Shown: positions 8,169 through 61,945 of the stretch, in pieces | How the letters are laid out: every line of letters begins with the position of its first letter | Position numbering within the stretch: position 1 is the first letter of the stretch | Sequence record: OP310984.1 | Strand: one strand, 5' to 3' | DNA length: 64,000 nt | Notes under the pieces: generated by a model | The model's database searches: none | Seen by the model: the letters and a program-made list of their open reading frames with translations, nothing else | Told to the model about the DNA's origin: nothing | Made by a program: the position numbers and the translations under genes

Positions 8169-8266
8169 TATATTGAACCATATTAAGTTAGTAATTGGCA
8201 ATCAGACTATATAAATCTTAATTATTTTTTAGTATATAAGCCTCCCACTAGGGGAGGCTATATTTC

Positions 8267-54338: not shown

Positions 54339-56222
54339 ATGAATAAAATGCTAAACTTCCTAAACCGTACGCTATATAGCGGTACTGAAAAAGTATCTTC
54401 AAAAGCTACACCAAGTCTAGAACACTTTAAAACAAATGTTGAACAAGTAGATAAAAAGATTCTACAACCCTTTAGTACTAAATTTAAAACCATTCTAAAA
54501 GAATGTTACAGTAATGAAGAGTGGGTTGAAGAACAATCATTTATTGAAGAACCTATTGATCTTGGTTCAGCTGCACGCGGTCTTACCGAGCGCGGTATTA
54601 TGCGTGGTGATTGGGGACGCTTAGCGCATTCCACTATTAAAGAAGCAGAAGGTATGATGCGTACTTATAGTGGTCGTCTAAATGAAGATATGGAGGCATC
54701 TGAAATTAATGAAGTAATTCAAGATATGCCTTATAACTTCACAGCTGGCTCAGCTAATACTAGCCGTTTAGAAGAAGATGATTCTATTTTTGTTGAAGCA
54801 GATACAACTGTAGTTGAACCTCTGTCTAAGCAGACTCTGCCAAAAGTAGCAGAACTTACTAACCAACTAGTAGAAGTTTATAACCGAATCACTGAAGAAT
54901 TTACAGAAACTGGTATTGCTAAAGTTGAACAAGTTGAACAGCCAGCAGTTCTTGTAGCACTTGGTGAGATCATTAGTAGTTTTAATAAACTAATTGATGC
55001 TTCATGTGGTGCTCTACCAGTGGAAGAAACTGTTATTGTAGAGGAGGATCCGTTACCTGCCATTGTTACTGGTCCAACTACTGAACCCATTGATGGTGAA
55101 ATTCCACCTGTTGATGCTATTAATAATTCTGCGGCATTAGAAGAGTTTATTGAAGAAGTACTAAGTACTAATCCAGAATTCATTAAATACCAAAGTATGA
55201 ATGATAGTAATATTGATTCATATCTAACTGGAGATGACTGGATTATACTAAAATTTAAAGATGGTTCTTATTATTTATACAATGCCCAGAGTGCTGGTGA
55301 AACAAATATAGAAATCATGAAAGATATGGCCGAAACTGGTAGTGGTCTTAATGGTTTTATAAATCGAGTTATTCGTGGCGGGTATGTAGAGAAGTCCATC
55401 ATTAATACTCCCGGTTTTATACAAGTCTCAAATGAAGGTCTTATCGACACCATTAAGAGTATCTTCGACTCTGGCCCTGAGATCAATCTTGATAAAAAGA
55501 AGAAAGCTATTGCTACACTGAAAAGTACCTATGGTGATGCCAAATGGGTGGCAGAAGCAAAGCTTAAAACCGGCGAAGTAAAAGTATCGAGTTACGAGAC
55601 GTTCGCGTCTAATGATCCTAAGACCGCAAAAGCCAATATCACTAATGCTGTAGCTAAAGCTGATCGTCACAACCAGAAAGTTCTGGATGAGAACAGTAAG
55701 ATACTGGCCCCCGTGGTTAATCTGTTCAAAGGGAATGATTGGCAAGACCCTAAGAAAGTCGCTACTCTTCTGGCTGAATGGAAACCCAATGTAAAGACAA
55801 ACTTCCAAGAACCCAAATGGCCAGATAATGCTGGTGCTAAGATTAAGTTGCTTGATGCTACCGGTATTGTGGAAGCAGCTAACGTTATCATTGACGTTCT
55901 GTCTAACAACACTAAGACTATTGCGGACACTTGGGTAGCCCAGTATCCTGACCTATCTGTCAATGGGGATATCTACAAACATAAGCTATCCACTATTAAA
56001 GATAAAGATGCTCTTGAGGATGTATATCTGCTGGCTAAAAGGGCCGATAATGCCATTCTTAACATTCATGCATCGTACGACGACGCTAAGGTTGAATCTA
56101 CATATCGAGTATTTGCTATCGACATGTTGAAACTAATGCAAGCATCTGTCAGTAGCTTCCCAAGTGGTTCAACCGTAGAGAACACCAATGAACGCAATAC
56201 GGTCATTGGTATTGAAGAATAA
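54339..56222 (+). CDS. internal head (ejection) protein, gp303-like, with an embedded KTSC-like module
   Basis: 627 aa, acidic propeptide, prohead-protease-type ALE and SNE sites; SNE is followed by GLIDTIKSIF, typical of phiKZ inner-head paralogues. Confidence 0.65.
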   Translation: MNKMLNFLNRTLYSGTEKVSSKATPSLEHFKTNVEQVDKKILQPFSTKFKTILKECYSNEEWVEEQSFIEEPIDLGSAARGLTERGIMRGDWGRLAHSTIKEAEGMMRTYSGRLNEDMEASEINEVIQDMPYNFTAGSANTSRLEEDDSIFVEADTTVVEPLSKQTLPKVAELTNQLVEVYNRITEEFTETGIAKVEQVEQPAVLVALGEIISSFNKLIDASCGALPVEETVIVEEDPLPAIVTGPTTEPIDGEIPPVDAINNSAALEEFIEEVLSTNPEFIKYQSMNDSNIDSYLTGDDWIILKFKDGSYYLYNAQSAGETNIEIMKDMAETGSGLNGFINRVIRGGYVEKSIINTPGFIQVSNEGLIDTIKSIFDSGPEINLDKKKKAIATLKSTYGDAKWVAEAKLKTGEVKVSSYETFASNDPKTAKANITNAVAKADRHNQKVLDENSKILAPVVNLFKGNDWQDPKKVATLLAEWKPNVKTNFQEPKWPDNAGAKIKLLDATGIVEAANVIIDVLSNNTKTIADTWVAQYPDLSVNGDIYKHKLSTIKDKDALEDVYLLAKRADNAILNIHASYDDAKVESTYRVFAIDMLKLMQASVSSFPSGSTVENTNERNTVIGIEE

Positions 56223-56244
56223 CTTACTGAGTATGTAATGATAT

Positions 56245-56390
56245 GTAGAAATGATCCCTCCCCCTCGTTTCTACATTAGTCATAATAAATCGGAGCCAGT
56301 CCCCCTTCCAACTGGCTCCCAGAGAGTAAAACTCTTTGCTGGGCATTAATGACGATATATCGCCTCCCTTCGGGGAGGCTTTATATTTTG
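56245..56390 (+). ncRNA. candidate small RNA with two C-rich loops
   Basis: TAC-N15-ATG promoter (56225-56245); 10-bp stem with loop TCCCTCCCCC; 9-bp stem with loop CCCCCTTCCA; a third stem; UUCG terminator at 56356-56388; no ORF. Confidence 0.65.
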
Positions 56391-56442
56391 TTTTTACGTA
56401 TGTATATTAAAATATGTATAAACAACATAGAGTAATTATAAA

Positions 56443-56895
56443 ATGATCAAAAATGAACTTTTACCAGGGCTAATCTATGCCCAAAAAGAATTTGATAAAA
56501 TTGCAGCTAATGTAAAAGACTATGATAAGTATAAAAGACGCGAAGCTGGTAGGGCAAGTGCCGTTTTAAGAAGTCTAGTGAGCAATATTGTAAATCAGAA
56601 TAAACCATCCTCACTTGAACATGAAGGCAAAGTTAGTACTACTAATACTAATGAATATTTAGAAGAAGTTAATAATTACTTCTTTAACATTAATAATATT
56701 AAATTAATTTCTCCTAAACTCATAAAAGAGAAATTAACAATTGATCTAATGAATATTTATGTTAAATGGAATATGATTGGAGTGGCTGGCCGAAATGATG
56801 TTCCAATTATTGAACACAGAATTAATGATTGGTGCGAAGTGACCGATGTCTACATTAATGGTAATAAGATAACTTCTTTACAATGGCCACGTTGA
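56443..56895 (+). CDS. hypothetical protein
   Basis: 150 aa. Confidence 0.7.
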   Translation: MIKNELLPGLIYAQKEFDKIAANVKDYDKYKRREAGRASAVLRSLVSNIVNQNKPSSLEHEGKVSTTNTNEYLEEVNNYFFNINNIKLISPKLIKEKLTIDLMNIYVKWNMIGVAGRNDVPIIEHRINDWCEVTDVYINGNKITSLQWPR

Positions 56896-56953: not shown

Positions 56954-57038
56954 GCCCGAATGGTGAAATTGGTAAACACAGAAGACTTAAAATCTTCCGG
57001 CTACGGTCTTGTCGGTTCGAATCCGACTTCGGGCACCA
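56954..57038 (+). tRNA. tRNA-Leu (anticodon TAA)
   Basis: Cloverleaf with long variable arm, loop CTTAAAA, TTCGAAT T-loop, encoded CCA. Confidence 0.95.
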
Positions 57039-57047
57039 ATTTAAATA

Positions 57048-57123
57048 CGGAGTGTAGCGCAGTTGGTAGCGCGCCTGCTTTGGGAGCAGGATGTCGGGAG
57101 TTCGAGTCTCCCCACTCCGACCA
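57048..57123 (+). tRNA. tRNA-Pro (anticodon TGG)
   Basis: CCTGC-TTTGGGA-GCAGG anticodon arm, encoded CCA. Confidence 0.95.
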
Positions 57124-58442: not shown

Positions 58443-58494
58443 TAAAATATTACTGGTTATGTAATACTATGTAGGAAGTCATGTCCATACGTTT

Positions 58495-58571: not shown

Positions 58572-58577
58572 TTTAAT

Positions 58578-58653
<76 letters not shown>

Positions 58654-58684: not shown

Positions 58685-58737
58685 ATGTTGCCATGGGTTA
58701 TCTTATGAATTAAAATGATTTACTTGAGAGCACACTC

Positions 58738-59751: not shown

Positions 59752-59903
59752 GTGTTACGTACACCAATGCTAGAACCTCACAGAGGGGCAGGGTATCTTA
59801 GTATTGGTAACAGTCTTTACACCTTATAAAGGCAGCCATTTGGCTGCCTTTATGCCGTTACCGTTTATCTTATGACTTAACTGTATTACTTGAGAATATA
59901 CTC

Positions 59904-61808: not shown

Positions 61809-61869
61809 TATTACATATCTATATTAGGTTGTCAGTAACTCATCTCTAATATAAAATCGCCATAATTCT

Positions 61870-61945
<76 letters not shown>

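Follow-up and report, generated by a model that had tools for sequence, protein, structure and literature searches.

A conserved small RNA with C/U-rich hairpin loops in phiKZ-like jumbo phages of Pseudomonas aeruginosa

The locus, its promoter and its transcript

We analysed 64,000 nucleotides (nt) of sequence record OP310984.1 (the whole stretch is called the window below) and focused on a small RNA (sRNA) gene at positions 56245-56385 (+), i.e. from the predicted transcription start (+1) to the predicted 3' end. The gene lies between the homologs of the phiKZ genes PHIKZ303 and PHIKZ302 (gp303 and gp302). The 3 kb around it match Pseudomonas phage Koomba boorn-mokiny kep-wari Wadjak 2 at 100% identity, and PA7, KTN4 and further Phikzvirus isolates at 99-100%; the window is Phikzvirus DNA. 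In the reference genome of phiKZ, a model nucleus-forming jumbo phage and phage-therapy candidate, the sRNA region aligns to NC_004629 273954-274163 (minus strand) with ~97% identity, between PHIKZ303 and PHIKZ302. The features of the locus are as follows.

56224-56245, +, promoter: TTAC (56224-56227), tandem TATGTA repeats and TATG (56242-56245), with G56245 as predicted +1
56245-56274, +, hairpin 1: 10-bp stem GTAGAAATGA (56245-56254) / TCGTTTCTAC (56265-56274), one pair being U.G
56255-56264, +, loop of hairpin 1: TCCCTCCCCC in DNA, UCCCUCCCCC in RNA
56279-56353, +, three-way junction of the minimum free energy (MFE) fold: 5-bp closing stem GUCAU (56279-56283) / AUGAC (56349-56353) around hairpins 2 and 3
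56292-56300 / 56311-56319, +, 9-bp stem of hairpin 2: GGAGCCAGT / ACTGGCTCC in DNA, GGAGCCAGU/ACUGGCUCC in RNA
56301-56310, +, loop of hairpin 2: CCCCCTTCCA in DNA, CCCCCUUCCA in RNA
56320-56338, +, hairpin 3: CAGAGAGT / AAA / ACTCTTTG in DNA, CAGAGAGU / AAA / ACUCUUUG in RNA
56354-56396, +, intrinsic terminator: GCCTCCC-TTCG-GGGAGGC (RNA GCCUCCC-UUCG-GGGAGGC, 56362-56379), with an A/U stem extension and a U-tract
54339-56222, +, upstream gene, PHIKZ303 homolog (virion structural protein), stop codon at 56220-56222
56443-56895, +, downstream gene, PHIKZ302 homolog
56954-57038, +, tRNA-Leu(UAA)
57048-57123, +, tRNA-Pro

Late promoters of phiKZ carry a TATG motif whose final G is the +1 and which is recognised by the non-virion RNA polymerase, and its middle promoters carry the motif AAanTTACc near -24 (PMC4666361). 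G56245 was assigned as the start site by this TATG rule; it is the opening base of stem 1. TATG with its final G is kept in all three genera in which we found the sRNA (Phikzvirus, Pawinskivirus and Miltoncavirus, see below), and in each of them the first transcribed G opens stem 1. As for the middle-type motif, TAACTTACT lies at -25 to -17 (centre -21) in the window and AAAACTACC at -29 to -21 in reference phiKZ, both being approximate matches. The promoter starts 2 nt past the stop codon of the gp303 homolog, a junction that is the same in Pawinskivirus and PhiPA3, and the consensus of the three genera reads TTAC-N4-TATGTAATG-N-TATG followed by TAG, starting 1-2 bases after that stop codon.

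An earlier note on this DNA, made from the sequence alone, had likened the promoter to those of the phage tRNA genes by its TAC-N15-ATG spacing, which the TTAC-N14-TATG arrangement also satisfies. The likeness is real, although it is carried by a longer similarity: the promoter 22-mer TTACTGAGTATGTAATGATATG reappears as TTACTGGTTATGTAATACTATG at 58450, 24 nt ahead of tRNA-Asp. The bare spacing is common and uninformative by itself (34 sites observed in 64 kb against 22 expected), and TTAC-N14-TATG occurs at 3 sites in 64 kb against 2.2 +/- 1.5 in shuffled sequences, i.e. near the composition expectation, so the case for the promoter rests on the extended 22-mer similarity together with the position. 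The second copy of the 22-mer (58450-58494) predicts a start at G58471, and, by this shared element, the sRNA and the tRNA-Asp/Asn pair seem to be under common regulation. We note that the gp303 C-terminus and the upstream half of the promoter are of another type in reference phiKZ and some isolates (fnug, KEN19 and others), the promoter half carrying AAAACTACC at -29 to -21, while the TATG start and the RNA are kept (compared were phiKZ locus L002 2470-2514 and window 56200-56244); judged from this comparison, the difference indicates recombination right at the promoter.

The transcript has been seen in phiKZ. According to Putzeys et al. (2024, microLife, PMC10914365), who mapped phiKZ by ONT-cappable-seq, TU237 is a 141-nt transcript upstream of PHIKZ302 that ends at terminator T131; a northern blot confirmed its length and abundance and also showed a read-through form, and TU237 was listed as a 5' untranslated region (5'UTR)-derived noncoding RNA (ncRNA) candidate with a possible regulatory role. 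In the window, 141 nt counted from G56245 end in the U-tract, at ~56385 (the predicted 3' end), within UUUAUA after the terminator stem. The predicted length from +1 to the terminator equals the published one, so that the prediction and the phiKZ experiment agree. By its sequence and place, the window RNA is the ortholog of TU237: both share the intergenic slot between the gp303 and gp302 homologs, the strand, ~97% of the sequence, the terminator and the predicted length. They differ in loop 1 (UCCCUCCCCC in the window, UCCUUCCCCC in phiKZ), in one pair of stem 1 (G-C in the window where phiKZ has A-U) and upstream of -14, where the sequences diverge because the C-terminus of gp303 differs. 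The existence and size of this RNA are already published for phiKZ and hence not new. As far as the text of PMC10914365 is searchable, it holds no structure, conservation, loop analysis or function of TU237, and in the searchable literature up to November 2026 we found no functional study of the sRNA.

The gene 3' of the sRNA changes from genus to genus: it is gp302 in Phikzvirus, tRNA-Leu in Pawinskivirus (with the sRNA terminator ~35 nt ahead of it) and gp374 in PhiPA3, where the gp302 homolog is 1.8 kb away. A constant link to one downstream gene, as expected of a cis-acting leader or riboswitch, was not found across the three genera. Its own promoter and terminator, a fixed junction to gp303 and a changing downstream gene speak for an autonomous sRNA gene and against a leader dedicated to one gene; transcription of the gp302 homolog, tRNA-Leu and tRNA-Pro would depend on read-through or on a start of their own. 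The earlier description of the locus as a stand-alone small RNA is supported: its length of ~141 nt is that of the northern-validated TU237 ending at T131, and the unit keeps its place after gp303 in all three genera. The accompanying statement that there is no open reading frame (ORF) needs a correction in the letter, since a 32-codon ORF begins at an ATG inside stem 1. That ATG is ATA in phiKZ and is missing in the other genera, which makes the region non-coding; we rejected a coding role, as both this ORF and a 40-codon ORF on the minus strand are unconserved.

Fold and conservation in three genera

The promoter, three stems, loops and UUCG terminator proposed by the earlier note are all present at the stated positions, and the MFE fold recovers every hairpin listed above as well as the stem that closes the junction. 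The MFE is -56.2 kcal/mol, as compared to -31.7 +/- 3.4 for 200 dinucleotide shuffles (z = -7.2). The terminator has the make-up of a rho-independent one, with a 7-bp stem containing 6 G-C pairs, a UUCG loop and a U-tract (UUUAUAUUUUGUUUUU; the DNA after the hairpin reads TTTATATTTTGTTTTT). It is strong and invariant, and no alternative anti-terminator fold was evident.

Homologs were found in every examined Phikzvirus record, in the Pawinskivirus phages PS119XW, phiLBG22, HPP-Temi, PA1C and BRkr (their 5' two-thirds being ~73% identical), and in the Miltoncavirus phage PhiPA3. The last was found with a covariance model trained on the cores of the Phikzvirus and Pawinskivirus homologs, PhiPA3 being left out (61 bits, E = 6e-13). 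As delimited by these sequence and model matches, the sRNA family spans three genera of P. aeruginosa jumbo phages. The model revealed no paralog in the window, and it gave no match at the sites after gp303 in 201phi2-1, Phabio and Viktualia, these sites being the part of the three genomes that was searched. Using the PhiPA3 homolog as query, blastn returned terminator matches only and no further genera, and scans of IMG/VR with the hairpin-2 pattern returned PA7 and PhiPA3 only. Another 20 metagenome loci from these scans were discarded as GC-rich chance matches that have neither hairpin complementarity nor similar flanks.

The intergenic regions after gp303 in 201phi2-1, Phabio and Viktualia carry a different, unrelated structured element. 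In 201phi2-1 and Viktualia a common element follows the gp303 homolog (TATATG followed directly by TAACACCTTGAATTACTTGATTTTT...AAACCCACAGCTTAGTCTAACTAGGTTGTGGGTTTTATG; L019 4800-4890 and L018 3925-4015), which may be an unrelated ncRNA in the same slot.

For the structural alignment, 10 homologs from the three genera were fitted to the structure of the model (27 pairs). In this alignment 97% of the cells are paired and 8 of the 27 pairs show compensatory double changes; none of 500 shuffles matched the covariation score of the real alignment, and when the partners were slid against each other, pairing fell to 38-48%. An independent MAFFT alignment of 9 sequences gave 5 compensatory pairs with 98% of the cells paired. 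Hairpin 1 has compensatory changes in 5 of its 10 pairs (10 homologs), the two loop-proximal pairs of hairpin 2 covary (U-A, C-G, U.G and G-C, A-U, C-G), and hairpin 3 has one compensatory pair (A-U, G-C, U-A) with 92.5% of cells paired. The stem that closes the junction is present in all genera with unrelated sequences (GACCACAG/CUGUUGUGGUC, GAUCACAG/..GUGAUC and CUCGGC/GUCGAG in the Pawinskivirus and PhiPA3 versions).

Against this background of changing stems, loop 2 keeps CCCUUCCA in all 10 homologs, at an overall identity of 58-65%. The invariant fraction is 72% for stem 2, 80% for loop 2, 18% for loop 1 and 6% for the linker; hairpin 2 is the most conserved element of the RNA, whereas change has accumulated in hairpin 1 and in the linker. 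Neither the length nor the sequence of loop 1 is fixed: most Phikzvirus isolates have UCCCUCCCCC, Pawinskivirus has UCACUCCU, PhiPA3 has CCUACUCCU and reference phiKZ alone has UCCUUCCCCC. A CUCC core is kept in all homologs but reference phiKZ (CUUCC). The worry raised in the earlier note, that the loops might vary freely among relatives, is removed for loop 2 and applies in part to loop 1, which varies around CUCC. Likewise, the term anti-Shine-Dalgarno (anti-SD)-like loops describes a conserved design (an invariant loop 2, and CUCC in loop 1), while the CCUCC that was emphasised for loop 1 is CCUUCC in reference phiKZ.

The 3' tail of gamma-proteobacterial 16S rRNA ends in ...CACCUCCUUA. 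Five-mers of this tail have a density of 0.002 per nt across 164 kb of phage genome, yet each homolog of the sRNA has several of them within 50-80 unpaired nt. The window RNA has one core and two wobble variants of these 5-mers in 53 unpaired nt. Pawinskivirus has ~45 extra unpaired nt with CCCCUCCUUU and UUCUCCUUG, the latter being retained in PhiPA3; these extra motifs resemble the 16S 3' tail (CCUCCUU, CUCCUU) with 6-7 nt reproduced, and at least four core 16S-tail motifs, CCUCCUU among them, are fully unpaired in Pawinskivirus. Counted as CU-rich motifs per RNA, Phikzvirus has two (UCCCUCCCCC and CCCCCUUCCA), PhiPA3 and Pawinskivirus three or four. The RNA shows design traits of anti-SD-seed sRNAs, namely unpaired and conserved C/U-rich motifs that are complementary to GGAGG-type sequence and are held by covarying stems.

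Known small RNAs and possible pairing partners

Rfam scans (10 kb and 221 nt of the window, and the Pawinskivirus and PhiPA3 loci) gave nothing above any gathering score, cis-regulatory families included. Weak matches to STnc100, rnk_pseudo and ErsA were set aside, as they cover the terminator only. RF02344 (alpha-r14) is the only Rfam family that weakly resembles hairpins 1 and 2; its 19.9 bits (E = 0.06 on 221 nt and 2.8 on 10 kb) fall short of the gathering threshold, 58.8 bits, and we regard this resemblance as an analogy, not as homology or membership. The alpha-r14 sRNA NfeR1 has identical anti-SD loop motifs that act as redundant seeds and occlude ribosome-binding sites (RBSs) independently of Hfq (PMC10746234). 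Like alpha-r14 and NfeR1, the phage sRNA has several hairpins with divergent stems and a near-identical C/U-rich anti-SD-like motif in each loop; unlike them, it carries CCCUCCCCC and CCCUUCCA in place of CCUCCUCCC, its loops UCCCUCCCCC and CCCCCUUCCA being related but no copies of CCUCCUCCC, and it comes from a lytic phage and, by its promoter type, would be transcribed by a phage-encoded RNA polymerase.

Firmicute sRNAs with C-rich loops (the hairpins of Staphylococcus aureus RNAIII, RsaE/RoxS; UCCC motifs) are a second comparison: stable hairpins present C-rich apical loops that seed on G-rich Shine-Dalgarno (SD) sequences. Sequence and organism are unrelated here, and the two window motifs prefer G-runs longer than a normal SD. 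Phage T4 encodes small stable RNAs in its tRNA cluster (species 1 and 2, or rnaC and rnaD), which are, like the sRNA, non-coding neighbours of tRNA genes in a lytic phage; the T4 RNAs are co-processed from a tRNA precursor, whereas the sRNA has its own promoter and terminator, and homology between them is not to be expected. By analogy with these systems, the phage sRNA is best described as a non-homologous addition to the class of C-rich-loop, anti-SD-seed sRNAs, in a lytic jumbo phage and beside tRNA genes.

The ncRNA candidates of the phiKZ group (3'UTR_PHIKZ298, 5'UTR_gp40 and sRNA-gp182/201phi2-1 sRNA005), which were found by Grad-seq or ONT-cappable-seq, are likewise short, structured, abundant and bounded by phage terminators. 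They have no similarity to the sRNA in sequence or structure and are without C-rich loops, the window homolog of 3'UTR_PHIKZ298 being G-rich. This homolog (window ~59752-59865) contains CAGAGGGGCAGGG, followed by the terminator AAAGGCAGCC-ATTT-GGCTGCCTTT; in the energy scan described below, the sole pairing analysis made, it stayed below the cutoff strength of -13 kcal/mol with the C-rich loops. In PhiPA3 (L016 4186-4331), a second promoter (TAATATG followed by TAG) precedes a structured leader of ~140 nt (MFE -44.9, z = -2.9) whose terminal stem UAGAGAACAG/CUGUUCUCUA directly abuts tRNA-Leu, and this leader may be the counterpart of the 'sRNA immediately upstream of a tRNA' reported for 201phi2-1.

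To look at partners within the phage, we used the 131 start sites annotated in the identical genome OP310984. Their SD elements are short (AGGA, GAGG or GGA), with GGAGG at only one of the 131 sites. Duplexes between the two loops and these start sites have median energies of -5.5 and -4.5 kcal/mol, with only 3% at -10 or below. Given these weak duplexes and the near absence of GGAGG, we rejected phage translation start sites as targets. Energies of -10 to -13 kcal/mol require that the Phikzvirus loops meet G-runs such as GGGAGG or GGGGAG.

We also searched both strands of 164 kb of phage sequence for complements of the loops at an energy cutoff of -13 kcal/mol. Almost all strong complements are the G-rich 3' arms of phage terminator hairpins, a family of the form CAUAAnGCCCUCCC-loop-GGGAGGGCUUAUG. 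Near-identical terminator hairpins (CATAAnGCCCTCCC-loop-GGGAGGGCTTATG) are found at window 16103, 25802, 46358, 52589 and 54263, and members of the same family also at 8241, 21669, 27492, 41201 and 57531. The TTATG on their 3' side restores the TATG core of late promoters and hints at combined terminator-promoter cassettes between phage genes.

Possible function and rival explanations

The locus is an independent small-RNA gene of the phiKZ-like jumbo phages of P. aeruginosa. This work adds that the RNA forms a family in three genera, that covariation supports its structure, that hairpin 2 is invariant and that 16S-tail-like motifs occur several times; it also adds that the upstream context is constant while the downstream one varies, and it excludes phage start sites as targets. 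Taking the structure, covariation, loop conservation and autonomy observed here as the starting point, we infer pairing in trans, the kind of target and an effect on translation. Our favoured reading, held tentatively, is that of a trans-acting, stand-alone base-pairing sRNA whose CU-rich seeds occlude G-rich SD-like sites, probably on host mRNAs. A phage-encoded RNA polymerase would start at G56245 from the TTAC...TATG promoter, putatively of the middle type, and the UUCG-loop terminator would stop transcription to give an abundant RNA of ~141 nt with its 5' end buried in hairpin 1. The rigid stems would then display the CU-rich motifs as redundant seeds, which could pair in trans with G-rich SD-like sequences of the GGGAGG or GGGGAG type and thereby block ribosome binding and/or trigger decay. 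The likeliest targets would be GC-rich host mRNAs, and the AT-rich phage mRNAs would escape because their SD sequences are short; together with the neighbouring phage tRNA genes, the sRNA could form a translation-takeover module. Host RNAs of the GC-rich P. aeruginosa are plausible partners, given that the phage start sites pair poorly and that the terminator arms are already paired in cis.

Several observations weigh against this reading. Loop 1 differs between the genera in length and sequence, and reference phiKZ is without CCUCC; in addition, stem 2 itself is 72% invariant. The transcript evidence stems from phiKZ and not from the OP310984 isolate, and PMC10914365 reports read-through into PHIKZ302 and treats the RNA as 5'UTR-derived. 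Ordinary SD sites pair weakly (AGGAG at -6 and -4 kcal/mol for the two loops, and GGAGA is also weak), which means that the Phikzvirus loops are no general anti-SD titrant. Finally, no target was identified for either loop among the phage sequences scanned.

The near-invariance of stem 2 fits recognition by a protein, since the presentation of a seed alone needs no such constraint. In that case the CU-rich hairpin motifs, especially hairpin 2, would titrate or recruit a host or phage RNA-binding protein as a sponge or decoy, for which RsmY/RsmZ (for RsmA) and CrcZ (for Hfq/Crc) are precedents. Constraint on both the stem and the loop of hairpin 2 while hairpin 1 and the linker drift, sequence-constrained stems being typical of protein operators, is in line with such a role, and so are the several similar motifs per molecule and the lack of a good RNA partner in the 164 kb of phage genome outside terminator stems. 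On the other hand, no candidate gene for a protein partner is linked to the sRNA locus across the three genera, and we know of no Pseudomonas RNA-binding protein that takes C-rich CYUCC loops as its site; the sites of RsmA contain GGA, and those of Hfq are ARN or U-rich tracts. We consider a protein sponge unlikely. A leader acting only in cis is, in our estimate, rather improbable: it would set read-through into gp302 and tRNA-Leu/tRNA-Pro, or stabilise or process their precursor, with the 141-nt RNA as a by-product. The short and the full-length read-through RNAs of phiKZ share the same 5' end, which the authors read as conditional premature termination (PMC10914365); the short distance to tRNA-Leu in Pawinskivirus and the use of the same promoter type for tRNA-Asp also agree with a leader. 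This explanation is countered by the downstream gene, which differs per genus (with gp302 displaced in PhiPA3), and by the strong and invariant terminator with no evident anti-terminator fold, and a passive leader leaves the strict conservation of an unpaired loop sequence unexplained.

The earlier note had also offered pairing of the C-rich loops with the GGGAGG(G) 3' arms of the phage terminators, by which the sRNA would modulate termination, processing or stability. These arms provide nearly all of the strongest complements of loop 1 in the 164 kb (-15 to -20 kcal/mol) and several of the strongest of loop 2 (-13 to -20 kcal/mol), the terminator family is abundant, and the sRNA's own terminator gives a 7-nt match. 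However, each G-rich arm has a perfect C-rich partner arm only 3-8 nt away, across the hairpin loop of the same transcript, and with a cis arm so close the intramolecular hairpin should outcompete a bimolecular loop contact both kinetically and thermodynamically. Moreover, loop 1 of Pawinskivirus and PhiPA3 matches GGGAGG over 4-5 nt only. The version in which termination is modulated is unlikely, and pairing with terminator arms as a whole strikes us as very improbable.

Coming back to the favoured trans-acting sRNA, a more specific proposal is that it serves as a multi-seed mimic of the 16S 3' tail which masks G-rich RBSs of the host, so that ribosomes shift to AT-rich phage mRNAs, under co-regulation with the adjoining phage tRNAs; we hold this to be doubtful. 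If true, it would be an RNA-level device for the shut-off of host translation, conserved in three genera of P. aeruginosa chimalliviruses. Grad-seq data from phiKZ infection show host mRNAs departing from the ribosome and an advantage for the mRNAs and tRNAs of the phage (PMC8545117). The agents of this host-to-phage shift are partly known, and a conserved anti-SD-like RNA beside tRNA genes is a testable candidate for one of them; the three-genus alignment and the invariant loop 2 show which nucleotides to mutate or mask. To our knowledge, functions are known for very few ncRNAs of strictly lytic phages. Should the RNA turn out to be a protein sponge or a mere leader, it would be an ordinary addition to the list of phiKZ ncRNAs.

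Further downstream of tRNA-Leu and tRNA-Pro, the window contains genes for tRNA-Met, tRNA-Asp and tRNA-Asn. The tRNA-Asn(GUU) gene occurs twice (58577-58653 and 61869-61945), as a 100% identical direct repeat of 77 nt whose copies lie 3.3 kb apart. Another repeat, of 46 nt (85% identity), has its copies where two paralogous genes for virion proteins begin, at 58713 and 59879.

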